Made by a program: the position numbers and the translations under genes. Under the pieces are notes generated by a model, which searched no databases, was not told the DNA's origin, and saw only the letters and a program-made list of their open reading frames with translations. A DNA stretch of 64,000 bases, from positions 15,228 to 79,227 of the forward strand of contig JAAOMT010000057.1 in assembly GCA_016748015.1 (NCBI GenBank), read 5' to 3'. This DNA comes from Geosiphon pyriformis uo1. Lineage: Eukaryota > Fungi > Glomeromycota. Numbering within the stretch: position 1 is the first letter of the stretch; each line of letters starts with the position of its first letter. Below are positions 35,375-54,148 of this stretch, piece by piece.

Positions 35375-37042
35375 TCACGATAAAGAGTCGTCTAAATATG
35401 ATAGATAGTAAAATAAATATTATTGATCAATTGCACATACTGTAATTATATTCTCAATTTTGTTCAAGTTCTTACCTTCAGGCAAATATATTAATTCTTT
35501 TATAATCAACATAAATTTTTAATATTAATATATACTGTATAATAATTGAATCAATCAATTAATTACTTTTAAATTAAATTAAATAAACTAACCTTTAGAA
35601 AAATCAACTATCTGTGCAGTTAAAAGACGACTTGTATAAACTGCTTCTGGATGAATTAATGTTGTTGTTGTCGCGTCGTTCTTCAACATTCCTTTTATAT
35701 AATTTTCTGATTCTAAAAACTGGCGACACACAGTTTTAGACACTTCATCTGTAGACACCTTAAAAAGATATCGCTCATGAATCCTCGAAAGTTCAAGCAA
35801 CTTTTCCAGAACTTCTTCCGCAGTAGGACGATTCTTAGGATTAACATCCCAACACTTTATAATAATTTCGGCAATTGAAGGTGGAATAAGGGGGAAGGTA
35901 ATTTCAGGTCTTTGACCATTTAAAATATCCATTATAAGAAGGTGGTCATGAGAACGATCATGAAAAGGAGGTTTCCCTGTTGCTAATTCCCATAATAACA
36001 TTCCTAAACTATAAATATCACCAGCGATTGTAAACTTTTCTCCTCTTAAAACTTCTGGTGGAATGTATGGAATCACTCCAAATATTCCTTTCTTTTCCTC
36101 TGTTACTTTTCCTCTTGTTGTTGCGTCTATTATTATTGTTGTTGTTTCATGGTTTGTAGGTTGACATAATCCGAGGTCTCCAATCTCTACCCTATTAATT
36201 TCTGATTGTAGTATGTTGCCCGAGTGTAGGTCATGATGAATCATACCAGAAGAATGAATTGAATCAAGTCCTTCAGCTATAGAACGTGCGATCCATAATT
36301 TATTAGACCAACTAGTAGAATGAAAATTTGTTGATAAATATTTTCGCATGTCTCCATGTTCGGCAAACTCCATCACAATTCCATACTCGAGCGTTTCAGC
36401 GTTTTGCGTAATCCCCCATATTGAAGAGATATAAGTTAAGTCTTTACCGTTATTATTAATAAACATAGCTCTTTGAATATTTAACTATCAACACAGTTTA
36501 AAAAAGTAAATAGATAATATACAGTAAATAAATAAATAAATAATAGGTAAATATGAATTAAATATAAATATAAATAATAATACATTATTTACCTCTTTAA
36601 ACACTTCTGAACTGTTCGTTAGAATAATTTTTATAGCTACTTCTGTTCCTTTCAATCTTTCATATTTCATTGAACCATAATGTTTTATAGTCCACGTATC
36701 AATTAATCCATCAATTAGGGTTGCTTTATAAATTATACCGAACCCTCCTTTAGCAATTTCCTTGATATTCGAAAAACGCTCCCATGGAATCCATTCATAG
36801 TAATTCAATCTAGCATATTCATTATTATTATTATTAGGTGGAATATAGATTGGATTCTTAATGATTTCATCAACTACTTTATTGCCGCTTGAAAAGTTCT
36901 GGTAAAGTTTTTGAAAAAATATGAATTGGCATGCCGTACATGAATTCCCTTTATTATTATTTTGAATACTTTCTTGACACAGTTTACATTTGTTACAATC
37001 ATGAGCATATTGACGATGTCTATTAATTTCTTTGTTTTCCAT
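35375..37042 (-). CDS. Tyrosine-kinase-like (TKL) protein kinase, paralogue 1. Exons 37042-36593, 36484-35593, 35496-35476, 35391-35375
   Basis: AKGGFGIIY, VAIK, FKE|L, HHDLHSGN, DLG, GVIPYIPPE, DIYSLG, CWD...RP, with an N-terminal Cys-rich segment. GT-AG introns sit at identical positions in paralogue 2. No premature stops, CpGs retained. Confidence 0.9.
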
Positions 37043-37509
37043 GATGTGAATAAAGGACAAAGAATAAAATATGAATAGGTTATTATTCGAAGAGGGTTTC
37101 TTTTAAAAAGTTTATTTGATAGTACATTTAGAAATGAACAAATTTAATTAAGTAGCTATATTACACGTCAAACAAGTTTCCTAAATGAGCTAGTCAATTT
37201 ATTTATAAAAAACAAGAAGGCTTCATCAAATATATAAAAAACCTTATTTCGGATTGAAGTTATGGTTTAAATGATAATTTTTTTTGTTATTATAAAACTT
37301 TATTAATAACCACTTTTCATTTCATGTCTTTGACTTAACTTTAAATGCTTCAACCATAAACTTTCGAATTTCTTTTTTAAAAAACCAAGTGTTTTTAAAA
37401 TTTCAAACTGGTTTTATTATCAGTATTTTTTTGTTTTATAATATATATAAATAACTATTAATTATGGTGCTTGAATAATTTTATGAAATAAAATAAACTT
37501 GATAATTAT

Positions 37510-40500
37510 ATTTTTTTTTTATTAAAGTTTAATGAGTGGAGTCCAAACGCCACCTAGTGCTATACATTATACAAATGATTTAAACTAGGCATGAATCATG
37601 CCTTTGCTACACGTGACCAAACACTCAGACTAGTCAGAACAATACTATGCACTTATATAAACTGAAGTCATGTCACCAACACCCGCATAAAACAAACAAT
37701 GCTTACAATACCTAAAACTAATGCCGAGTGCATCAGCAACACCCAACAATCTAATCACCCCAGCTAAAAGCCACACAGAAAAACCAGAAACAGTGACAGG
37801 AATAGAACCATCACATAGAATCAACTTATTCTTTTCCATAATGGCCTGGTATTTCACACAGACCAGCCAGATATTATTACGAAATGCAAGACAAAACTCC
37901 TGTACAAAATTCACAACATTGACCACTGCCACCTTAGGATTCTTGTAAACAGAAACAAACTCGCAATACCAATCACCGAAAACAAAACCCTTACACAGAG
38001 CCATACTAACAGTCACATTTGAAATGCAAGTTGACAACAATTGTGATACACATGAAGATGAATGAAACAGACCAGAACACATCTCCCAAGCAGCTGTATA
38101 AGTATCCAACAAATTGACATGACTATTAGTGTCAGAAGAGCAAGAAAAGACATGGTCTGAGACTTTAATCTCACCACAGAACAAACAAACTACACTGGGA
38201 TAACCCCTATCATACAGACGCTTTTGCACAGCAACAGAAAGGCAATAATGAAGGGCTTTCATGAAATATGTATGAAAGCCAGCCACCCGAATACTAGTAA
38301 AACCAGTCACCATGTGGGAATCCGGATGCCACACCAGAGAGGACCTCAACCAGTCAATATCAGCATGTAAACAATCTGGAACAACCCAGGAACCAGAACC
38401 AACCTCCCAATGTGTGCGATAAATTGACCTGAATACGTCATGAACAAAATGCTTCGAATTACCAAAAACCATATCAACACCAACCTTCAAAAACCTCTCA
38501 CTAACCAAGTAGGACAGATGCCAAGCAGAAAAGACAGTATTCTTAGCCAGCGCATTAGCACACTCATTGTCTGAAACACCCAAATAGCTCTTAACCTTAA
38601 TTCAATTAACATCCAAATTTTTGTGATGAATGATATTGGTAATGTGATGACGCTCAACCCAACAACAATTCCTGAAATCAGGGCCAACTGATAAAGACTC
38701 CGACCTGCAAGCATCAATAGCTGCCTGACTGTCCGAGAACAAGTCAACCAAATAAAAAAAAGGAACACATTCAAGAGCTAAAGCAATGGCCTGCAACTCC
38801 ACTAAAGTAGAAGAAACCAAACCAAAAACCCCCACATCCAGACCTGAACCAATGTTCTCAAAGAAAACCACAGTACCAGTTAATATGTCAACAGTGCCCA
38901 AATTACTCAGAGACCCATCTGTGTATACAGAGAGGCAGACGGCACCTACACTCAACAGATCTTTACAAATAACACCAAAACCAAGAGACTAATGGATGTT
39001 AGAAGACTCACCAACACCCTCATAAAGGGAATGACCAGAAGAAAAAACTACACCACCAAGAAAACACACAAAGAAATCAAACCAGGAGGGGACCGGGCCA
39101 TGGGGATCCAGTCTTTTCCAACACTTGAAAGTTTTCCAATCAAAAACAATGCCATTCCGATCACAAAGCTTTTCTATAAAAGCAATACCATAACGCCTGA
39201 GAAAGGAGACATATTTGAAGAAAATTGTCTCACCAAGTACTAGAAACATAGAAGTACTGCAATGAAGATGAAAAGTACCAGCCAGAGAGCCATCCAAAGA
39301 CAAATCACACCCAGAAAAAATACAAACCACACCTGCCAAAAAGTTGTTTAAAGGGCTGACTCTAACCCGAACAGGAAACAACAAAGGGTGACGAGGACGC
39401 CAGCTAAGAACCTGAAGATTATGAGACCTATGAGAAAACAAGCAACCCAAAACACCAACCAAATTCACAAAAGCAATAACAGAAGCTGACTTGCTCTCAG
39501 CCTGAATTTGCTCAAAAGTCTTTAAATTGTACAAGGAAAAATGATGAAATATATCATTGGGAAAGTCCAGAGGCAGCCCAGATTTGGATTTTAGGCTCTT
39601 GCATATCAAAGCATCCCATTTGTTACATACACTAAGAGAAATAAAACTGAACTGAGTTCTGTAACTGATGATAGAAAAGAGAACCGAAGACACCAAATAA
39701 GCAAACTGTTTATCTGAAATAACTTTTCTCAGAATAAGATTGACAAAAACCAAACATCCAAATGCACTTTAACCAAGTTAGACTTTGAAAGACCATCAGA
39801 AGATAAAAAAATACCCAGATAATGATGAGGTTCACTTCTATTAGTGATGGAAATTGGCATACCACTGATAGTTAGATAAGGAGTAGCGACCCGACAATTG
39901 ATAGGAATGGCCACAGTCTTGTCATTGTTTATTGAAATGTCATTTAAACGAAAGAACTTACTAGCAACATTGAGGATGTGTTGTGTAGCAGCTTGGCTGC
40001 TATTAATTCAGATAGTGTCATCAACAAAAGCACCAGCAGCCAGAAACGATGTCAGCCCAGCTTAAGATTCCACTTGGCCAGTCTTAAAAATGAAATAAGA
40101 AATCAATCTGTAATCATAAATGCTCTCTTGTCTTTTAACCTCACACAAAAGTGAGTCATAAAATATGCACCAGAGAAGTGGTGAAAAAACCTCCTTCTGA
40201 TCCAATCTATCATGAACATAATATCTATTAGTCAAACCAAAATCTGTCATCACTCTGTTAGTGTGACCATTATGAATGCTACCAAAAAATCTGATAAATT
40301 TGTTACACATTTTGATCCTGGTTAAACTCCTCTTGAGATGCTCCCAACTAACAGAATCATAAGCTTTGCACATATCCTGTAAAACCAGTTACAACTCTTG
40401 GTTCTTCTCCAAGGCATCTTTGATCACCGAACCAATAGCAAAGATAGGCAATTGAGTAAACGTACCTTTTAGGACAGAGAAATTGTCCCCGCAGAGGACA

Positions 40501-43500
40501 TCAAAAGTATTACAAACCAGAGAGATCCAATCTGAGAGAATCTTGGAAAAGACTTTGTAAGCTGTCTCAATTAAAGCAATAGGGCAGGTATTTGTAAGAA
40601 CCCCCTTCCACTTGTAAGATTTAGGAATCATTGAGACCCAGACTTTCCTCCAAGGTTTAGGTACTGACTTACAACCCAAACAAAAATTTAAGAGCACCAA
40701 AAGCATATCCAAGACCGACTTGTCACAGTGTTTCCAGAGTTCATTAGGAATACCAAAAAGACCAGCCGCTTTCCCATCGGACAAATTTGAAATAACACCA
40801 AACATCTTATCAAAACCAATTAAATGCATTATATCAGAGAAGACATCATTAAAGACATGATTCAAAGGCAGGAATTGCCTTGCCCAATCATCAGAGATAT
40901 CAGAAGCCATCACACATTTCCTAGTCCAACCCTCCATAATTCCATCCACCTTAGATTTAACCAACTCAGGCTCCAGGACTAACTCCCCACCATCCACCAA
41001 ATGATTCAACACCACTTTACAAAAAGGACACTTCAAAACACTTCTAATAGTGTGATCCTTATCCACTTCAAAACTCTCCATCCTTCTCTCAATAGCCTGC
41101 CTTATACTAGATTCCTTAGCAGGCTTTAATTTTAACAACTTAGAAGTGCAATAAGACTTCCTTGTCTTAGCCAGTCCAGAACGGATTGCATCAAAACTGG
41201 CACCAAAAAGAAACAGAGATCTAACTGACAAAGTGCCCACAGAATCAAGCCTGTTCCAAGTATCCAACAACAAGACAAAATCTCCACCAGAAACCAACCA
41301 AGAAGCCTTCACCAGTTTAGACACAAGTAGCTCCAGTTTATAAAACTGGGAAGATATCTTATTAAAAACACAATCGAAACTCCTAAACCATTTTTTCTTG
41401 AACGTTTTACCAGCCGAAAAAACCATAACCTTACAAACAATGTTTTATATTGCATCCAGATCAGACAACTGCTTAGCCACAACAAACTCATCCAAAAACA
41501 TAACAGCATTAGCAGCCATAGCATTCCTGAATTCTGACCACTTAATCTCACTGGTAATTTTGATATCATACTTCCAACAATCTCTATTAGCTTGTTTGCA
41601 CAGTGAATTTAGCTGGACATTGAGCAGGCCACCCAGTTCCACAGAAACATAAACAGTCTTGTGATCAATATTAAAGTATTCCTCAATGCCATCCACACCA
41701 CGATCTACCACTGCACCAACCAAATTAGAAGAAACAAACACATAGTCAATTGTCTTAGTAATACTATGAGAATTGCACCAAGTAGGTGACTTTACAAAAA
41801 AGCTCCCCCCCAGAGAGTTAATCAAACCCAAATCAAAACATTTTTTGAAACTGACACATTTGTGCAAACCATCCTTATTAAAATTACCACTAAGAATAAT
41901 GAAAGAAGACTCATTAATGGCTTTAGCAATGAGAGAGTTAATCTCACCAGCCTGAAAAAACTGAGCCACTGATGAAGCACCAGCATAGAGCCCCAAAATA
42001 GACACTGAGAGTTTATTTTTGAAAAGCAACTTGATGGATAGGAGCTAACCAGGCACCTCAGAGACTTTGTAGATGTGCTTTACTAAAGAAGAATTCACAA
42101 TGATTAACATCCCAGCACTCAAAAAACCAGAATCTAGACCAGAAGTAAAAACCTGAACACCATCAAATTTGTCGGCCAACCATGGGCGAACTTTCCCTTT
42201 AAGCTTTGTGAAAATAGAAACCAAATTGTCCATATTCTTGTGTCAATGAATGACATCATCTTGCTTCACAGAATTGTTCAAACCACGAATATTACACATA
42301 GCAATTTTCCATACCAGACTACTCATTGAAAAAGAGGTAGAGGAAAAGCACCACCTGCCAAAGCCAAACCATCCAAGTGCACTGATAGGCTCATGACCAA
42401 AGCAGAAAGACCTTCCAACATGTTTTCCAATTTCATAACCTCAGGTGAGGCAGTTGAACCAAGAATGGCAGCAGTTTTGTCACTAGTAGCATCACCTGAA
42501 CCCATTCCCATCACTATATCTTTCCCTTGATTCTGCAATAGGGAGGTTACTGGCAGCTGACATCCAGGGCTAGGCTGGGAAACTGCCGGCATAAATGAGT
42601 CCAATCTCTTAGCCAACTCACTAATTTGTTCTGCGAGGCTGACAAAACTGCTTTCAATATTTTTCAAATGGTCTTCCAATTCACCATTAACAGTCAGAAG
42701 AGGTTTACCATAAGATATGGAACCAGATTGAGCTGAACCACCAAAAGACACTAATGGGAGTGGTTTACCAATCACAGAGGCCCAAGTTTTTTTACCGAAA
42801 GCCAAAGGACAAAAAACAGAGGCAGATTTTTTTTCATATATCTTTGCCAGATGGAACTGATCCTAAGCTGAGAGAAGAGCTCTCTTGCTCCTAGAACTTG
42901 AGGACGCACCAGCAGTATGACAAGCAAAAGAAGTATGACTGGAAGTTTTGCAAATTGAGCACAGTGCAGTGGTTAAATGAGACTATCAAAGACTAACACC
43001 TTTTATAACAAGAGTGTTTGCCATTGTCTGAATAAGGCTACCTTCAGAATCAAAACACACAGTGGCACAGTGTGTTTGGACATAATTGACAGAACTGTGT
43101 TTAATAACACATGTTTTTCCACTGACTAAACCAATGAAGTCCCAAAGATCATGAGTGTTGATGCCCATGGGGAAAGTATAAAGCAAAGCTCTAAACTCAT
43201 CTCTGGCATTCCATGTTTGTTTGTCAACATCGGCCTGGACCACACGCACCGTATCTTTTCCAATAAGGATAAACCACTTAGCTGCCAAGAGATCAGCCTA
43301 AATTTGATCCTCCAATTTGACAATCGCCTTTTGCCATAGACCTACCAACTACATCTTGATTGACTTAATAAACCCAAATTCAGAAATGGCTGCACACACT
43401 GCCTTAATGGAAGTTCCCACAGAAATTTTTTTCAACACAATTGCCCAATTCATACAATTGTTGATGGGACACTTGAGATCAGTGTTTACCACAATACTAT

Positions 43501-44265
43501 AATCATTTGCCAACTGCACAGCTGTCATCATTGCCTTTTCAGAAATGAAAGATGTCCGAATGATTCCACCAAATTTTGAGAGGGTAGAGGCCCCCCCAAA
43601 ACTATTTATACCTAAAAAGATTTTTCTGACAAAATTGACTTTTTTCTAAGATGATTTTCCAGCCACCACTACAAGATCAATATCTAAAGTAAAGGATTTG
43701 CGAACAGGCACTTGAATGGATGGCTTGACTGGAAGAGGAGGTGGAAGAAGAAGAAAATCATCCAACACATCATTTTCTACATTGACAGTATCATAATCAA
43801 TTACACCCAGTGGCTTTCTTAACACTTTCTTGGTCTTCACATACAAACCCTTTGGTGTTTAATCAGAATTTCTTCCTGCAAAAGTACTATTATCATCATA
43901 GTCTACACTGGTTTCTTCAACCAAGCATTCTTCTTCCATGTCAATACTCTCAGATTCCATAGTGTCACCAGTCTTAGAACTCCATGAATGAGCACCAAGA
44001 GCTTTGGCAGCAACCCCTTTATTATCAATACTCTCTTCCAACACACTTCCCTTCCTCTTCTTCCTTGATACAACAGCCTTAAAACCACCCTCAGAACCAG
44101 AAGCTTTAATGGTCTTCTTCATAACAGCAATAACAAAGTCAACAGTGATCTCGTAATCAAAGAATGATTTTGATTTATCATACTGAATGGTAAAAAACTT
44201 CTTTCGAAAAAACTATAGACTCTTTTTTGGGATTTTTGGATGAAGGAAAGAAAGAAGTTTTTACT
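37510..44265 (-). mobile_element. LINE copy F, full length (ORF1 44122-42323; ORF2 42326-37645: EN-RT-RNase H-ZnF)
   Basis: Complete colinear domain set: KIAMCNIRGLN, IDYVFVS, AYDSVSW, AGAFVDDTI, VYTDGS, CLFCGE..SDHVFSC. 3' UTR at 37528-37647 and poly-A. The 5' end resembles copies B and H. Confidence 0.95.
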
Positions 44266-45097
44266 ATTATATTAAGTTAATATTTTTGAAATTTTAATAT
44301 AAAAATTGGTTCAATTAATTAAATTTATAATTATATTAATATATTCAAAAAATAATAATTAAAAAACTTTTATAAAAATTAACAAACTCTTTTTTTTTTT
44401 ATCATACTTAAAGCAAAGAGTAAAATAATTATAATCTCTTATTTTTGATCTTGTTTTTATTTATCAATTCTTTTTTTTTTATGTAATATAAAAATAAAGC
44501 AGTTTTTTAACTATTTTTAGAACATCATTTTTGGTTTTATGTAAAAGTTTTTTCCCAAGTAATTATAATTATTATAAAAAATTAACAACAAATTAATAGC
44601 AAAAATTATTTTTATTTTTTATTATTTTTTTATATTTACTTAAATAATTAAAAAAGCCAAAAAAATTAAAAAGCAACTTTTTTATTTTTTTTATTTTAAA
44701 GTTTGTTTGTTTTTTTGTAAAAAATAAAATATTGGTTTTATTTAATTTATTGATATTTACATTAGTTTTGTTAAAATTATATTAATTATAATATTTATTT
44801 TAAATTTAATTATAAATAATAACTTTTTTTTTAAATAATAATAATAATAACATATATATTAAAATTAATTTAAATTAATATATAATTAAATTATTTAATA
44901 TATATAAAATATAACAAAAAAATAAATATGTATAATTATTTTAAATTTAAATATATTTATAAATTATTTTAAAAAATTTTAAAAATTTAATATTTTTAAT
45001 TTAAAAATAAAAAAGTATTTATTAAATAAATAATTATAATTTATAAATAATAAATAATTTATGTAAAAATAATTTATAATTAAACTATAATAATATA

Positions 45098-48000
45098 TTT
45101 TTTTTTATTCATTTTAACAAGTGCAGCCTAACCACTATTTAGCATACAGAAATAAAGCAAAATATTCCAAACTAAACATGACTCATGTGCTTACTACATG
45201 TGACTGACCACTTAGACTTATCAAGACAACACTATACACTCATCAGAACTTCCTTACCATCATCCAAACCAGAAAAAAACAAACAATACTTATGTGAACC
45301 AAAACTGACAGCAAAAGACTTCACCACATCTAGCATGTGAACAACACCATCAGATAGCAACCTGGGTAGACCTTGTGACAGAGCAAAATTCCCACCATCA
45401 TTGCAAATCAGACCAATCTTTTCTATATCAACTCTAAACTTAGATCTCAACAGCCACAGATGATCATGATGATCATCTACAAGATGACAAACAAACTTAA
45501 CAACAATTGACTGGGCCTTCTTCCCGTCACCAAAAATGGAAACAGCCTTACCAATCCAATCTTGAAAAACAAAACTCTTGCACAAAACAGCATATATACT
45601 GACATCTAAAGTATTTGCAAGTGTGTTTAGCACTGAGAATGATGCAGGAAAGTGAACACCCACCAAAGATTTCCACAATTCAATATGATCAGTCATGACC
45701 TTCGAATGTAAAAGAGAATTTGCAGAACACATAAAAACATGATCAGAGAATTCGACATCACTACACATCAGACACAAAACACTCAGATAACCAATGTTAT
45801 ACAATCTTTTACAGACAGCCACTGGCAACCTATTGTGAACAGCTTTTATCAAATAGATGTGCAGAACAGCTAACCTTCTGCTAGTAAAACCTGCCAGCAT
45901 ATGAGAATTCAGATGCCAAACAGAAGCAGTACACTCTTAATTAACGCAATGAAGAAAAGAGCTGGACAAGACATTTACACCAGGACCAGCTTCTCACAAG
46001 ACATGGCACACAGTTCTGCAAACATCATGGATAAAATGCCAAGCATTACCAGAAACCACTAGACCATTTGCCACAAGAAACCTATTATGAACTCCAACTG
46101 GAAGAAACAAGCTATATCAAGATGCAACAGAGGCCATGGTATCAGCCTGATCATTGCCAAACACTCCAAAATGTTCCTTTACCTTAACTCATCTTACAGT
46201 AACGTTCTTAGATTTGATCAAATTAGCAATATGCCATTGTTCTACCTAGCATCTGTTGCAAAAGTCAGTTGACCCAACTTACATTCAGATACACACACAT
46301 CCAAAGCTGCTTGACTATCAGAATGAATAACTACAGAGCAGGATAAAGAAACACACTCCAAAGCCACAGCAATTGCTTGCAATTTTGCCAGCATAGAAGA
46401 CAACAAACCCTGAACTTTAACACCAACACCTATATTAATCTTAGAGAAATAAGCAGCTGCTCCACAAGCCACACTTAAAGTACCCAGACCACTCAATGAG
46501 CTATTAGTGAAAATATTCAACTCCCCTGTCCAAATCTTATGCAGGTACTTGCAAACAACCAAAAAATCACTTGAACAGAAGAGACCAGAACTATCCAACA
46601 CTTCACTATTGTTTAAATCTACTAGACTATTACACATGTACACAAAAGCCTTATTGAACCAAACTGGTACTAGACCCCTAGGACTCAATCTCTTCCAGCA
46701 ATGAAAAGTCTTCCAATCTATGACTTGATCCTGCTTAGTCAGCAAACAGTCACCAAAAGCAATGCCGAAGCATTTCAACAAGCGGACCACATCAAAATAG
46801 CATAAAGCACCCAGAATATCAGACATTGGGAAATGTTCAGGCTTATGAAATGCACAAGATAATTTGTTATCCAAGAAAACACCTGTATCCAAGAAGATCC
46901 TTACAACCCCAGCCAGAAAATTGTTCAGCAGACAAACTCTCAACTTAACCAAATGGCACAAGGAATTCAAAGAAGTCCAACTCAAAACTTGCAAGTTCAA
47001 AGCACAGTGTTCAAACATATGACCAAGAATCCCAGGAGCATTGGAGAAACCAATCACTGAAGCAATCTTGGCTTCAGCTTGTACTTGCTCAAAAGGCTTT
47101 AAACTATATAGAAACAGATAATGTAACGCCTTGCTGGGGAAATCCTTTGGCAAAAACGCCTTAGTTCTAAGTCCTTTTTTGATCATGATATCTCACTTTT
47201 GACACACACTTTTAGCAACAAAACTGAATTGCATATAATAACATATAATAAGCTGAAGAACTGCCAAAACCAAGTAAGAAAATTGCTTATCTGACACTGT
47301 TTTTTTAAGAACCAAATTAGAAAAAAACCTAACATCCACATGTGTTTTGGTAAGACTTGGTTTCAAAAGACCCTCTGTAAACAAAAAAATACCAAGATAC
47401 CTATGAAATTCACCCTTTTTTACAACAGAGATGGGTTGGTCACTGATGTACAAAGAGGCATCCTTCACCCTCTAATTGATGAAAATCGCCACAGTTTTGT
47501 CATTATTAATAGAAATATTATTTATATCAAAAAATTTACTTGCTATATTCAGAATATACTATGTCAAGATCTGGCCATTACCAATCCAGATTGTATTATC
47601 AACAAAAGCACTTGTAGCAAAAAAGAATGACATGCCACCACTAGATTCGACTCTGCCAGACTTCACCACAAAACTCGAATTGATCCTGTAGCCGCACAAA
47701 TGTTTTTGCCTCTTAACTTTGCACAAAAGAGGATCATAAAAAATCCTCCAGAGAAGTGGAGAAAATATCTCACTCTAATCCAAACCATCATAAACAACAT
47801 AACTATTTGACAAACCAAAATCAGTCATAATTTTATTAATTCTATTCTTATGAATATTTCCAAAAAACTCAATGAATCTGCTATACATCTTGATATGCTT
47901 CAAACTGGATCTCAAATGATGCCATCCAACTGAATCATAAGCTTTATGCATATTCTGTAGAACCAGCCAAATTTTCCGGCCTTTTTCCAAAACATCCTCC

Positions 48001-51000
48001 ACAATCAAGCCAATGGCAAACACTGGGGACTGAGTTGAAGTACTTCTTAAAACTGAAAAATTGTCACCATAAAAAACATCAAACTCACTGCAGACCAAGA
48101 AGATCCAATCTAATAAAATCTTAGATAAGATTTTTTTCACCATTTTAATTAAGGCAATTGGCCTGGTGTTAGTTAGAATATCATCTTATTCATAGGGCTT
48201 AGAGATCATAGAAACCCAAGCTCTTTTTCACAAACCAGGTACATCACTAGCTCTCAAACAAGAATTCAGCAAATCAAGAAGACAAGCCAACACATCAGCA
48301 CTACTGTGCTTCCACAACTCATTAGTAATACCAGAAAGACCAGCAGCTTTGCTATTGAACAGCCCACTGATAACCAGAGACAATTCACTCAAGCTAATAT
48401 CACTTATCACGCCCAAAAAGGCATTATCATTTACATGATCTAAAGAGGCATACTGATGAGTCCACAGACCAGAGAGAGCTGAAAGAATCCTCCGCTTATG
48501 AATTCAGCCCATTATGATTTCATCCACTCTAGACCGAACCTCCATGAGGTCCAAAATCAACTCATCATCAACTACCAAATAATCCAACACAATTTTGTGA
48601 AAAGGACACTCCAAGACACTCCTAATCATCTTACCTTTATTAGAATTAAAATTCTCTATATGTTTGTCTATTGCGTCCCTAATGTGTTTGCATCTAGCCA
48701 ACTTAGTCTCATGGTATTTGGATTTCTGATAACATTTCTTGACTTTTAACAAAAGACTGTACAGCTCATGTAACTTTGAACCATTCTCAAGCAAAATAGC
48801 AACCTCTGAGGCGTTAACAGCATCAAGAGCTGACCAAGCCTGAACAAAATGCTCCACCTCTACCAACCTACCTGAACATAAACTCTTTGTAATCTTGGCA
48901 ACCAAAGATTTTAGCTTAAAAAACCTCAAAGATTGTTTGTTTTTAGGACCATCAAATTTACAAAACCAATGTTTAGAGAAAGTTTTATCAGCTAAGTTGT
49001 AAACAGCACTTCTCAATATCTCCCACATCCCATCCAGATTTTCTCCTTCTTTTGAGACCAAAAAAGTATCTGAAAGCTCAAACAACTTGACCAAAAAGCA
49101 ATCTCTAAAGCAATTCCATTTGACAGCATCCACATCTTTAATCTTATACTTCCAGTGGTCTTTATTAGCCTGCTTGCAAATACTATTCAGACAAGCATCA
49201 ACCAAACCCTTCAACCCAACCAAGATATCAATCATATCATGATCAGTGTCAAAAAATTCAGACACAGAGACAATACTATGCCCAACAACAGCCAAAGACA
49301 GAATCTTACTTACAAAAACATAATCAATAGTTTTTTCAACTCCTCAGAAATTTTTCCAAGTAGATGAATTATCCAGAGGATGACCATCCAACAAGTTGAC
49401 CAACCCCAAATCTGAACACTTCCTAAAACTAGCACACTTTCTAGCACTGTTCTCATTGAAATCTCTACCAATGACCACAAAAGAACTACAATTAACCATT
49501 TTAGAGATGAGTGAGTTAATACTAAGAGCTTGAGCAAAATGTGTTTTGGCAAAAACACCAGCATATAAATCCAGAAAAGTAACCAAAAGCTTATTCTTAA
49601 ACAACAAATGAACAGAGATGACCTAACCAGGAACCTCCTTAACTTTTAAAACATGCCAAGCTAAAGAACCATCCATGACCACAGCCACATCCATACCAAG
49701 AAAACCCTCTTCCAGACCAGACATAAAAATTCTGACACCCTCAAACTTGTCCTTAATCCAAAAACCAGCACTCACTCTTAACTTAGTCTTAGTGAGAAAA
49801 GAAACCATGTTACCAGATTCTAGATCCAACAAACAATGTCCTTTTGTTTCTCCAAATTAGTCATGCTCTTGATGTTACAAGTAGCCACCTTTTAAACTAG
49901 ACTATTCATAGAGAGGAAGAAAGCAATGATGAACTCGAAACAGAACATAAAAGATCCAACTTAGCCAAGACAGAACTGACTGACACCTCCAGAGCTGATA
50001 TTTTAGATTCCAAACCACCCACTTTGGAAGTCAGAATCTTCGAACTGCTTGAACTGAAACCAACAACCAATTCACCAACATTTGGAAGAAAGAAAGGGGA
50101 TGATGCCAACATGCCATCCAAAACCATATTTGAATCCAAAACAGGAGCCATAAGCACAGAAACAGCCAGAGATGAAACACAAAAAAGAGGTGCCAAGAAC
50201 ACCAACTCAACAAAACTCAACTTTTTCAGAATACCAGAAACCTGGTCAGATAAGATTTCCAAAGAGCGTTCCAGGAAAGCCAAATGATTATTCAACCCAG
50301 AGACAACAAGAAAAGTAGAAGCCAAAGAAGGAGAATTTGCATCTGAAACTGAACCAACACCAAGAGCAGCCAAAGGAACCACATGAAGTGAGGAGCCCCT
50401 AGTAATTTGGGCCCAAGTTTTCTTACCAAAAGAAACAGGACATGCAATAAGAGCCTGCTTTTTCTTATAAATATTAGCCAAATAAACTTGATCCCAATTA
50501 GTTACCACCTATTTCCCATGAATCCCAGAATTCCCACTAACCAAACACACATCAAAAATATGACCAAATTGTTTACATTTGGCACAACACGCCAATGAAA
50601 GACTAGCCCAGTGCAAACTAATATCCTTGAAAACTAGAACAGAACAAATAGCAGCCAACTTAGATGCCTCATCCTCAAAACAAATGACAGTGCACCTGTT
50701 TCATATGTATGATACAGGATTACAACTGATGAAACAAGTTTTCCCATCATATGCCCCCACTAAACCAAAAAGATTATGAGCCATAATGCCAACTGGAAGA
50801 GTATAAAGCAAAGTCTAATGCTAATTCCTAAATACTCACACTTGTTTGTCCTTATTTGCCAAAGCCACATGCACAGAATTTTTTCTCATGAACACTGACC
50901 ATTTAGAAGCAACCAGACTGGCCACCTCAGATAATTCAAACTCCACTAGGGCTTTCTGCCAAAGTCCAATCAACTGTATTTTAATTGAAATAATTTTGCC

Positions 51001-51991
51001 AAATTTGGAGAAAACCGATTCCACTATTGATCTGAAAAAATCCACTGGGATCTCCTTAACAATTACCTCCCGATTTGACTGACTGTTTATCTTTCTAAGA
51101 TCATTATTAACAAGAATTTTATTACTAATCACCAGCACTTTAGCCTTATTTAAACTGGATTCTAACATAAAAGATAATCTAATAATCCCAGGGAACTTTA
51201 AGGAAGTGAAAGCACCCCTAAAACCATTCACTTAATAAAAAATTTTTTTTATTGAAATTAATTTATCACCAACTAATTTGCCAAACACTGCAGAAAGCTC
51301 AATATCAAGTGTGATAGATTTTATCGAATTAAAACACTGCATTTCTAGGGCATGTGATTTGAGTAGTGGCAAATGATTGAATCTGATATCTACACAAGAA
51401 AGAAATTCCAGCACAACATTGTCATCACTCATACTTTCAAAAGAAGACTACTTTAGTGAATTGCCCAGTGTATACATCTGAGTGCAAGTCTTTCTCAGTA
51501 TGTCATTGTCCATGTTGTCATTCTCACCTGATTCTGCGTAACTGGTTTCTTTGGCTACTGTGTTTGCCATGTTTTCTATATCTAAGAGATTGCTTATACT
51601 GCCAGCAACACTGCCAACCTTGCTTCCCCAGAACACACCAGACTTGATGCCAGTACCACTAATATTTTTCATGCTTAATGGACCAGTAGACGAGTTGATT
51701 ACATCACTAGTAACAGGCTTCTTTGGCTTCTTATAGGATGCACTATGCGAGTAAACCATATCTACATGCTTACTTTTTGCACTTTAGCAGGTCTTCAAAC
51801 CAGCTGAAATCAAACCCAAGCCACTAGCAGAAGGGCCCACTGGTTTTATCATGACAAATGGAGGTAAAGTAGAAGAAATAGTTAATAGAGATTAGGGGAA
51901 AGGAAGAAAAAAAAGCTACTTCTTCAAAGTTATTAATGCTTTCATCATGGTCAGAAGATCGACAAGAGAAAAATTTTATGTGACTTTTTTT
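45098..51991 (-). mobile_element. LINE copy G, full length, distinct ORF1 subfamily (ORF1 about 51852-49906; ORF2 49909-45232)
   Basis: Same ORF2 domain set and 3' UTR (45113-45234). Candidate low-complexity TSD TAATAATATA at 45088-45097 and 51992-52001. Confidence 0.93.
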
Positions 51992-52006
51992 TAATAATAT
52001 AATATA

Positions 52007-52007
<1 letters not shown>

Positions 52008-52056
<49 letters not shown>
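52008..52056. repeat. (AAT)n microsatellite
   Basis: Direct reading, next to the 5' end of LINE G. Confidence 0.95.
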
Positions 52057-52062
<6 letters not shown>

Positions 52063-52411
52063 AATATTATTTTTAAATAAATTAATTTTAACAATTATAT
52101 TTGTTTAAAATATAATTTATAAATTAAAATAAAACTTAATTTAACAATTAATTTAAAATTCAAATAATTTTATGACTAAAATAATATTCTAAACACTTTA
52201 AATTTCAAGCTCAGTTAAAAAAACTTCAATAAAAATTTTTATTATCATCCAATTTAAATTTATAAAAATTTTTAAGTTTAAATATAAATAAAAGTATATT
52301 GAAATAAATATAATTTAAGATTTATTATATATTAAAATCATATAAAATATATCTTTTATAAAAGATTTAAATAATTATTATTATTTGCCAATGAAAAATA
52401 AATTATATCTA

Positions 52412-54148
52412 TTAAGAGTTGTCTAAATATAATAAATAGTAAAATCAGTATTAATTAATGGCACCACATAATTATATTATCAATTTTTTTTCAGCTACTT
52501 ACCTTCAGGCAAATAGACTAATTCTTTTATAAATTAAAATAAAATTTTAATATAAAATACTATATACACTGTATAATAATTAAATAAATGAATTAATTAC
52601 TTTTAAATTAAATTAAAATAAACTAACCTTTAGAAAAATCAACTATTTGTGCAGTTAAAAGACGACTTGTATAAACTGCACCTGGATGAATTACTGTTGT
52701 TGTTGTTGTTGTAGTTTTTGTTGTTAAGTAATTTGTTGTCGCGTCGTTCTTCCACATTTCTTTTATATAGTTTTGTGATTCTAAAAACTGGCGACATACA
52801 GTTTTAGACACTTCATCCGTAGACATCTTTGCTAAATACTGCTTATATATCTCCCAAAGTTCCTCCAACTTTTTATCAACTTCCTTGGCAGTAGGACGAT
52901 TCTCAGGATTAACATCCCAACACTTTATAATAATTTCGGCAATTGAAGGTGGAATAAGGGGGAAGGTAATTTCAGGTCTTTGACCATTTAAAATATCCAT
53001 TATAAGAAGGTGGTCATGAGAACGATCATGAAAAGGAGGTTTCCCTGTTGCTAATTCCCATAATAACATTCCTAAACTATAAATATCACCAGCTGTTGTA
53101 AACTTTTCTCCTCTTAAAACTTCTGGTGGAATGTATGGAATCACTCCAAATATTCCTTTCTTTTCCTCTGTTGCTTTTCCTCTTGTTGTTGCTTCATTAT
53201 TGTTTACTGATTGACATAATCCGAGGTCTCCAATATTTACGCTATAAGTATTTGATTGTAGTATATTGCCCGAGTGTAGGTCACGATGAACCATACCAGA
53301 AGAATGAATTGAATCAAGTCCAATAACTAATTGATGCACGATCCTTAATTTATCAGACCAACTAGTAGAATGAAAATTTGTTGATAAATATTTTCTCATG
53401 TCTCCATGTTCGGCAAACTCCATCACAATTCCATACTCGAGTGTTTCAGCGTTTTGGGTAATCCCATAAATTCTAGAGATACGATATAAGCGCTCACCGT
53501 TATTAATAAACATAGCTCTTTGAATATTTAACTATCAATAGAGTATAAAAAATCATAAATTAATAATAAATAGATAATAGAATAAATAATAGACGTTAAT
53601 ATACAGTAAATAAATAATAGGTAAAATATGAAATAATTAAATCTGAACTAAAGTTTAAATAATAATACTTTGTTTACCTCTTTGAACACTTCTAAACTGT
53701 TCGTTGGGATAATTTTTATTGCTACTTCCTTTTCTCGCTTTCTTTCATATTTCATTTCACCATTATGTTTTATAGTAGATTTATTAATTAATCCATTAAA
53801 CCATGTTGCTTTATAAATTATACCGAACCCTCCTCTAGCAATTTCCTTAATATTCGACAAACGTTCCCATGGAATCCATTCATAATAAATCAAATAATCA
53901 TCATCATATTCATCATCATCATCATCATCATGATTATTATTAGGTGGAATATAGATTGGATTCTTTATTATTTCATCAGCTTCTTTATTGCCGCTTGAAA
54001 AATCTTTATAAAGTTTTTCAAAAAATATGAAGTGGCATGCATTACAATAATTATCACCATTATCTTTAATACTCTTTTGACACGGTTTACATAAGTTGCA
54101 ATCATGAGCCTCTGGACGAGTTGTTCTTTTAATTTCTTTGTTTTTCAT
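52412..54148 (-). CDS. TKL protein kinase, paralogue 2. Exons 54148-53678, 53531-52628, 52523-52503, 52422-52412
   Basis: ARGGFGIIY, VAIK, HRDLHSGN, DLG, GVIPYIPPE. Same intron positions and 21-nt micro-exon as paralogue 1, reading frame intact. Confidence 0.92.

Follow-up and report, generated by a model that had tools for sequence, protein, structure and literature searches.

Two predicted TKL-type kinase genes and their family

The window analyzed here, the whole stretch of 64,000 nucleotides from one contig of Geosiphon pyriformis, carries two related genes whose models were drawn from open reading frames (ORFs) and alignment; these and all other features described below lie on the minus strand. 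Gene A (G9A89_016525, P0001; 448 aa) occupies positions 35588-37042, with exon 1 at 36593-37042, an intron at 36485-36592, and exon 2, including the stop codon, at 35588-36484, and it has a 100% protein match. Its predicted product is a TKL-type protein kinase with a Cys-rich N-terminal extension of ~85 aa, for which only sub-threshold C1-like matches were obtained in Pfam. Gene B, at 52623-54148 (exon 1, 53678-54148; intron, 53532-53677; exon 2 including the stop codon, 52623-53531), is located 17 kb from gene A; each of its two exons is open, and no corresponding protein was present among the matches of the protein database search. The spacer between the genes (37645-51759) contains two runs of broken retroelement ORFs, in which the Pfam matches to reverse transcriptase (RVT_1) and RNase H were weak and all sub-threshold.

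Profile searches were run on the exons separately, a database entry supplied the full-length protein of gene A, and the fold was predicted for gene A only (AlphaFold pLDDT, 87). Exon 2 of gene A matched the Pfam PK_Tyr_Ser-Thr profile (3e-35), and gene B gave a Pfam match of 1e-38; the exon 2 scores were 122 bits (A) and 134 bits (B) against PF07714 (cut-off, 23.1) and 111 and 120 bits, respectively, against PF00069. The β3 Lys, αC Glu, HRD Asp, catalytic-loop Asn, and DFG Asp are all present in both genes, at columns that are near-invariant, along with several departures from the usual motifs: DLG for DFG and PPE for APE in A and B, HHD in place of HRD in gene A, and His for the catalytic-loop Lys in A, B, and the family consensus. 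The best structural matches in Foldseek were RIPK2 and RIPK4, intermixed with the tyrosine kinases EGFR, JAK, and SYK, and the best phmmer matches were RIPK1, RIPK4, Roco4, MET, and MLKL. As judged by profile, catalytic residues, and nearest relatives, the predicted products of genes A and B are eukaryotic protein kinases of the TKL group.

At least 139 genomic matches, drawn from 746 candidates, belong to the same family. Pairwise identity within the family is 55-78%, against 37-41% for the closest homologues found beyond Geosiphon, and homologues in Rhizophagus, Funneliformis, Gigaspora, and Diversispora show 35-41% identity. From these sequence comparisons, the family is large, tandemly clustered, and specific to G. 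pyriformis. Kinase expansions in arbuscular mycorrhizal fungi (Glomeromycotina) are high-copy, partly tandem, and situated in repeat-rich regions (bioRxiv 10.1101/2021.03.30.436303). The Geosiphon family is likewise high-copy and partly tandem in a repeat-rich setting, and resembles in this respect expansions such as that of Rhizophagus irregularis, with more than 2000 kinases, but it represents a separate, Geosiphon-specific burst.

Variable patches on the kinase domain

Between genes A and B, 57 of the 291 aligned exon 2 codons differ, and these differences are strongly clustered: the longest identical run spans 63 codons and 24 differing codons adjoin another, neither of which was reached in any of 20,000 shuffles. 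The preliminary description had reported a near-identical stretch at 35841-36104 (gene A) and 52909-53172 (gene B), and exactly two differing bases, adjacent to each other, were counted in these 264 nt; the block extends to 35820-36124, with 4 mismatches in 305 nt. The near-identical backbone described for the two genes held as an A/B-specific feature of the 3' half of exon 2 only, whereas over the αE-β8 segment their identity was 85%, within the 84-87% seen with other paralogues. Outside the patches dN was 0.006 and dS 0.064, in contrast to a dN of 0.35 and a dS of 0.28 within them.

The four patches named previously were correctly placed, and their secondary-structure labels agreed with the AlphaFold model (αC-β4 loop, residues 161-171; αE, 209-228; β7-β8, 245-250; αI, 372-390). 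Patch 1, the αC-β4 loop, lies at 36416-36457 (B: 53466-53504), varies in length across the family, and differs between A and B as much as between members picked at random (rank 49 and 36 of 66). Patch 2 comprises an exposed stripe of αE at 36272-36304 (B: 53322-53354) and contains sites 214 and 218, with site 210 just outside. Patch 3, the β7-β8 turn at 36185-36202 (B: 53235-53252), has the highest mean entropy of all elements (3.1 bits) without a non-synonymous excess. A further patch that had been overlooked, patch 4, contains a 6-codon indel and lies at 36125-36160 (B: 53193-53210), where the activation loop starts, and a T-rich indel in the tail of the two genes had also escaped notice. 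Patch 5 covers the exposed face of αI at 35756-35836 (B: 52824-52904), where pS (0.41) is no lower than pN (0.28).

Changes within the patches had been described as unlike the C>T decay of the repeats and as mostly non-synonymous. The first statement was confirmed by 34 transitions and 33 transversions, a ratio that also rules out an origin of the patches by RIP-like C>T decay. The second held for the raw counts (Nd, 60.8; Sd, 13.2) but not per site, where pS (0.23) approached pN (0.28).

Throughout the family, variation falls at the same places: in the αC-β4 loop and the β7-β8 turn, on the exposed sides of αE and αI, and where the activation loop begins. Columns at which A and B differ had a mean family entropy of 2.54 bits compared with 1.00 for the others (p 5e-16). 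The helical periodicity noted earlier for αI was reproduced, and it extends family-wide to both αE and αI, which vary in stripes; αD, αF, αG, αH, and the catalytic loop are conserved. Entropy within the family correlated with that among distant homologues (rho, 0.65); since these positions are variable in distant TKL homologues as well, they are likely to be sites of generically low constraint. Trp, Tyr, and Arg are overrepresented at the hypervariable sites relative to the rest of exon 2, with whole-exon composition used as the baseline and intron composition discarded as too T-rich.

Mosaic ancestry and probable gene conversion

Gene conversion or recombination among paralogues, which the preliminary description had proposed, was supported by segment-specific closest paralogues and by significant maximum chi-square breakpoints. 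Genes A and B were mutually rank 1 in backbone segments and ranked only 32-49 of 66 in patches 1, 2, and 4, and in exon 1, the intron, and patch 1 they are not each other's closest relatives. Their special kinship is confined to the 305-nt tract, the C-terminal tail, and ~150 nt of the 3' flank. The tract itself, 35820-36124 in A and 52888-53192 in B, runs from the end of the activation segment to αH, and the next-closest paralogue is 7-8% different there. For a neutral comparison with its 2 differences in 264 nt, the intron gave a K of 0.19 and the 3' flank a K of 0.12, and the next-best paralogue showed a difference of 0.073 in this segment, so that tract divergence is far below that of the adjoining intron and flanks.

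Gene B also carries a segment at 53441-53729, covering the end of exon 1, the intron, and patch 1, that resembles the paralogue L017 rather than gene A (maximum chi-square, 47; reached in 0 of 200 permutations). Its intron is 95.9% identical to that of L017 over 146 nt, and patch 1 differs between the two copies by 4-5 synonymous and 2 non-synonymous changes. In triplet comparisons, breakpoints gave maximum chi-square values of 38-57, with the observed value again reached by 0 of 200 permutations. The PHI recombination test yielded p 0.047 over all sites and 0.38 and 0.75 for the backbone, with incompatibility near saturation, and this weak signal probably reflects saturated data.

Genes A and B can be rejected as simple recent tandem duplicates: because their exon 1, intron, and outer flanks are not sister sequences, they are not young duplicates. 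The same observation weighs against an account in which the patches are recent imports, that is, in which two young duplicates were overwritten by short conversion tracts from paralogues in a cassette-like diversification. Some segments do fit such imports. The intron and patch 1 of B are L017-like, patch 4 of B is identical to L013/L038 (46/46 nt) and that of A to L037/L028/L005 (39/39 nt), and a copy on contig C771 matches the first half of patch 5 of B at 94% identity. However, a genome-wide search returned no donor above about 87% for patches 2-3, none above 94% for patch 5, and none for patch 5 of gene A, so recent import does not account for patches 2, 3, and 5. Patch 5 is, from these comparisons, an island of old divergence flanked by two A-B tracts. 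Overall, we consider this account very unlikely.

The large size of the family and the similarity of its members could also have led to mis-mapping of paralogue reads, so that the identical block or the mosaic junctions would be artefacts of assembly or polishing. This is barely credible, given that the A-B block is at least 7% different from every other copy and thus is not a family consensus, that the junctions involve introns and flanks as well, and that independent pairs located on other contigs show this pattern too.

The probable explanation of the pattern, in our judgment, is that paralogues undergo ectopic gene conversion and that the tracts end at surface patches which are old and nearly free of constraint. 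Family members swap short stretches of DNA, and each gene is consequently a patchwork. The 305-nt block is near-identical because DNA was copied between family members, as a recent A-B conversion tract; the tail and proximal 3' flank represent an older shared A-B tract, and in both genes exon 1, the intron, and patch 1 come from other lineages of the family. The patch positions evolve near the neutral rate on average and carry old synonymous as well as non-synonymous divergence. Dense mismatches in the patches may block heteroduplex extension, in which case tracts would begin and end in the conserved backbone, leaving the backbone homogenized and the patches old.

Selection and the possible role of the variable surface

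The preliminary description had read the patches as a single surface on the kinase's back face that diversifies for recognition or dimer specificity and is maintained by selection while the rest is homogenized, with the family perhaps acting as a variable sensing system. Parts of that reading stood, namely recombination among paralogues, the same variable sites across the family, and the helical stripes, whereas it was opposed by an omega of about 1 and by raised synonymous divergence. The distribution of the variation favors it: changes cluster in the αC-β4 loop and β7-β8, along a single stripe of αE, and on a single face of αI, while the exposed front (αD, αG, αH, and the P+1 loop) is conserved, and the enrichment in Trp, Tyr, and Arg at hypervariable sites points in the same direction. 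It also has structural precedent. The αC-β4 loop, αE, and β7/β8 are adjacent in the kinase fold, the loop is anchored to αE in every kinase, its tip residue lies in the BRAF dimer interface, and the loop and the neighboring αE are elements used in RAF dimers (PMC11616992). RIPK- and RAF-type TKL kinases dimerize via the back or side of the kinase domain, and RIPK2, RIPK4, RIPK1, and Roco4 are the closest solved relatives by fold and sequence. In canonical kinases the αC-β4 loop is stable and conserved, whereas in the Geosiphon family it is hypervariable, differing in both sequence and length.

Diversifying selection in the patches, in the sense of dN/dS above 1, was not borne out. Maximum-likelihood omega was 0.95 in the patch windows and 0.34 in the backbone, and at the 41 columns that differ between A and B it was 1.12 among the other 65 paralogues, which is not significantly above 1 (2ΔlnL, 1.9; p about 0.17). 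Patch dN/dS values of 1 or below across more paralogues had been set beforehand as the outcome that would speak against the recognition surface, and the estimates came close to it (P1, 1.19; P2, 1.01; P3, 0.99; P5, 0.61). A pooled patch omega of about 1.3 in close pairs was marginal and was summed from pairwise numbers. Synonymous divergence was raised equally in the patches: among same-amino-acid codons, synonymous differences were 2.6 times more common there when nine independent close pairs were pooled (p 4e-4), and between A and B they occurred at 6 of 34 such codons in patches and 4 of 154 elsewhere (p 0.003). The patches thus appear to be older segments rather than fast-evolving ones on a young backbone.

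Site tests, in which marginal likelihoods were computed on an alpha/beta grid and three trees were tried, identified 12 sites at p<0.05 with one tree, whereas only 210, 214, 218, and 359 remained with local trees, and no site with beta>alpha in patches 1, 3, or 5 survived them. Sites 210, 214, and 218 of αE, spaced i, i+4, i+8, were the only ones with a non-synonymous excess under all three trees (p from 4e-8 to 5e-3). A mixture model with beta>alpha classes fitted much better (2ΔlnL, 81), with a posterior above 0.9 at 14 sites, 11 of them in patches. Both results favor a recognition surface, but recombination inflates site tests, and variability at these positions extends to distant TKL homologues, which points to generic low constraint. 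One stripe of αE may be under a little positive selection, and a selection-maintained recognition surface is unlikely as an account of the patches in general. We regard as quite doubtful the broader proposal that each of more than 130 kinases owes an individual specificity for partners or dimers to the variable back face (αC-β4 loop, αE stripe, β7-β8 turn, and αI), with conversion shuffling patch variants on a conserved catalytic scaffold to form a kinase-based recognition repertoire in an early-diverging symbiotic fungus. Taken together, the A/B pattern mostly reflects an ordinary process, and selection for diversity remains a weak hint.

In Podospora, the NWD/HNWD WD40-repeat genes form a fungal multigene family in which exchange homogenizes a scaffold and a few exposed positions are highly variable; they encode repeat sensors of the NLR type that function in non-self recognition, and their variable positions are clearly under positive selection. 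The Geosiphon family resembles them in its homogenized scaffold and few highly variable exposed positions. In the plant RPP8 NLR family, a tandem cluster evolving by intergenic exchange, duplicated neighbors exchange tracts, giving mosaic genes with heterogeneous divergence (PMC6771003), and the Geosiphon kinase neighbors are comparable in exchanging tracts and forming mosaic genes. Unlike RPP8, which has a dedicated ligand-binding repeat domain and demonstrated diversifying selection, the variation here falls on scattered exposed positions of a catalytic domain with an omega of about 1. No description of this patch and backbone anatomy or of its mosaicism was found in the literature searched.

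Glomeromycotina genomes are characterized by kinase expansions, and the present case shows how one such family evolves, with short conversion tracts on a conserved catalytic scaffold and variation restricted to the same set of exposed positions, whose evolution is about neutral. It argues against the view that patchy divergence between a pair of paralogues proves diversifying selection. Positions 210, 214, and 218 of αE form a small, testable set of candidate sites, and binding experiments could be guided by the difference, seen across the family, between the conserved front of the kinase domain and its variable back.

Two kinase genes and the distribution of their differences

The finding covers a pair of minus-strand genes, each intact and with two exons: gene A (exon 1, 37042-36593; intron of 108 nt; exon 2, 36484-35588) and gene B (exon 1, 54148-53678; intron of 146 nt; exon 2, 53531-52623). 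The second exon of each matched protein kinase profiles far above threshold, and fold and sequence placed the kinase in the TKL group, close to RIPK1, RIPK2, RIPK4, and Roco4. In exon 1, β1-αC is preceded by an N-terminal extension of ~85 residues that contains conserved cysteines. The exons were searched one by one, and the sole full-length sequence used was that of the gene A protein (P0001). A protein database search identified gene A as the annotated 448-aa protein G9A89_016525 (P0001), with which our gene model agrees, as 448 aa is the combined length of the two exons. No protein matching gene B was found among the database matches of this search; both of its exons (52623-54148, minus strand) are open with all catalytic residues present, and public records may lack an annotation for it.

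The preliminary description had reported near-identical 264-nt blocks in the two genes, which was borne out, with only two adjacent bases differing; near-identity in fact reaches over 305 nt (35820-36124) with four mismatches. Across exon 2, 57 of the 291 aligned codons differed, and these were far more clustered than by chance: neither the longest identical run (63 codons) nor the number of adjacent differing codons (24) was attained in any of 20,000 shuffles. Outside the patches, dN was 0.006 and dS 0.064, compared with 0.35 and 0.28 inside them. The AlphaFold model of P0001 (mean pLDDT, 87; pTM, 0.88) located the patches in the elements originally named, namely, the αC-β4 loop (residues 161-171), αE (209-228), the β7-β8 turn (245-250), and αI (372-390). 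A fifth patch, which carries a six-codon indel, lies where the activation loop begins, and the tails of the two genes differ by a T-rich indel. The ratio of transitions to transversions (34:33) indicated that the patch changes are not C>T decay, in agreement with the preliminary description.

Several further features accompany these genes. The cysteine-rich extension (gene A residues 1-85, 36800-37042, minus strand; gene B counterpart, 53900-54148) was modeled as three helices (pLDDT, 81-95), with Cys19, Cys35, and Cys38 nearly invariant family-wide, and gave only faint, sub-threshold C1-domain-like matches in Pfam (E about 0.1); it may represent a small zinc-binding module specific to this kinase family. 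In the catalytic loop (~36230-36240, minus strand), gene A has HHD in place of the HRD of gene B and the family consensus, which makes it a non-RD variant. Both genes and the consensus have His for the catalytic-loop Lys (HRDLHSGN), DLG for DFG, and PPE for APE. Approximately 150 nt 3′ of the stop codons (35438-35587 and 52473-52622, minus strand) are conserved between the genes (K, 0.12), with partial conservation in other paralogues. The stop codon sits within GGTTAG, which is also splice-donor-like, and many paralogues read through beyond it; there may be a further small exon or a 3′-UTR intron. The 14 kb separating the genes contains two runs (37645-44122 and 45232-51759, minus strand) of broken retroelement open reading frames that match RVT_1 and RNase H weakly; their G+C content is 0.35-0.41 versus 0.2-0.3 in the kinase genes.

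Variable positions across the kinase family

The two genes belong to a large, clustered family: exon 2 of gene A had at least 139 matches among 746 candidates in its own genome, many on the same contigs and most open over 270-320 codons, and the closest proteins outside Geosiphon shared only 37-41% identity. AM fungi are well known for expanded kinase families (bioRxiv 10.1101/2021.03.30.436303), and no description of the patch anatomy of this family was found in the literature searched. From several hundred members, 70 loci were retrieved and 67 intact copies aligned. Per-site entropy, a check named in the preliminary description, revealed that the patches are variable columns family-wide, with a mean of 2.54 bits at columns that differ between A and B versus 1.00 elsewhere (Mann-Whitney p, 5e-16). 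The map was the same for 59 annotated proteins taken as an independent set. Variability in this set was high in the αC-β4 loop, the β7-β8 turn, the start of a C-terminal helix, a stripe of αE (210/211, 214, 217/218, 221, and 224/225), and a face of αI (373, 376/377, 380, 383/384, and 387/388), and low in αD, the catalytic loop, the P+1 loop, αF, αG, and αH. In αE and αI, buried positions were conserved, so the helical periodicity noticed between the two genes is genuine and extends across the family.

αE anchors the αC-β4 loop in all kinases, and β7 and β8 pack on it (PMC11616992); the adjacency proposed for the patch elements therefore holds for three of four (αC-β4 loop, αE, and β7-β8). The RAF dimer interface includes the αC-β4 loop residue that corresponds to BRAF R509 (PMC11616992). 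Variability within the family tracked that in eight distant homologues belonging to other genera (Spearman rho, 0.65), so these positions are under low constraint generally in kinases of this type. The enrichment of Trp, Tyr, Arg, Ser, and acidic residues at hypervariable sites, compared with the remainder of exon 2, is compatible with exposed, possibly interactive positions, although it proves nothing.

Mosaic genes and conversion tracts

In backbone segments, A and B were mutually nearest, yet only one segment stood out, running from where the activation segment ends to αH (difference, 0.007; next paralogue, 0.073). At patches 1 (αC-β4 loop), 2 (αE), and 4 (activation-loop start), they were as distant as randomly drawn family members (rank 32-49 of 66), and in the αE-to-β8 segment (85% identity), each had an equal or closer paralogue (84-87%). 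The genes were not nearest relatives in exon 1 and the intron; the intron of B is 95.9% identical to that of the family locus L017, and that of A is nearest to locus L007. Windowed nearest-neighbor painting showed that B resembles L017 across the end of exon 1, the intron, and patch 1, and resembles A thereafter, except for breaks at the patches. At patch 4, B is identical to two other loci (L013 and L038) and A to three (L037, L028, and L005). Triplet max-chi-square tests (38-57; observed value reached in 0 of 200 permutations) confirmed the breakpoints, placing the L017-like segment of gene B at 53441-53729 (minus strand). The PHI recombination signal across the family was weak (p, 0.047 on all sites; 0.38 and 0.75 on the backbone), with incompatibility close to saturation. 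As L017 (G000:C609:356542-360375) and gene B (C694) lie on different contigs, exchange is not restricted to immediate neighbors.

Neutral divergence between A and B was far higher (intron K, 0.19; 3′ flank, ~0.12 over the first 150 nt and ~0.3-0.46 beyond) than that of the 305-nt block (<1.5%), which is thus a recent conversion tract. An older shared tract comprises the tail (4-8%) and the proximal 3′ flank. Patch 5 (αI), flanked by both tracts, had a pS of 0.41, at least as high as its pN (0.28), and no close donor was found in a genome-wide search; it is an old segment left uncrossed by conversions.

Selection on the patches

Evidence for DIVERSIFYING selection on the patches was weighed both ways using omega and site tests. 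The preliminary description read the patches as a diversifying recognition surface, a reading that we retain as a minority possibility centered on αE. Diversifying selection over the patches as a whole was not supported: maximum-likelihood omega (iqtree, GY+F3X4) was 0.95 across the patch windows (P1, 1.19; P2, 1.01; P3, 0.99; P5, 0.61) against 0.34 in the backbone, and was 1.12, not significantly above 1, at the 41 kinase-domain columns differing between A and B when estimated from the other 65 paralogues, independently of column choice (likelihood ratio test against 1: 2ΔlnL, 1.9), arguing against a general non-synonymous excess. Synonymous divergence was raised as well. At codons for the same amino acid, pooled from nine independent close pairs, synonymous differences were 2.6 times commoner in patches (27/328) than in the backbone (42/1257; p, 4e-4), as they were between A and B (6/34 versus 4/154; p, 0.003), indicating that the patches have a deeper history, beyond a faster protein clock. 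Within the B-L017 shared tract, patch 1 had four to five synonymous and two non-synonymous differences.

Site tests, run on fixed trees with our own likelihood-grid implementation along FEL lines, pointed to some positive selection. Beta exceeded alpha at 12 sites (p<0.05), nine of them in patches, with purifying selection at 95 sites, and a mixture model with beta>alpha classes improved the fit (2ΔlnL, 81; posterior >0.9 at 14 sites, 11 in patches). Recombination is known to inflate such site-wise and mixture tests. With a patch-only tree and local segment trees, αE sites 210, 214, and 218, spaced i, i+4, and i+8, alone stayed significant (p down to 4e-8), besides αH site 359, which was also retained; the αI sites were lost. 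Weak diversifying selection may act on the exposed αE stripe.

The sequence observation is confirmed. We regard it mostly as what gene conversion would ordinarily produce in a large family of paralogues whose nearly unconstrained surface positions form a fixed set. Since conversion would require homology, tracts would start and finish in the conserved backbone and halt at the densely mismatched patches. The backbone would be homogenized again and again while the patches retain or gain divergence, and some patch variants (patches 1 and 4) may also travel between genes together with flanking DNA.
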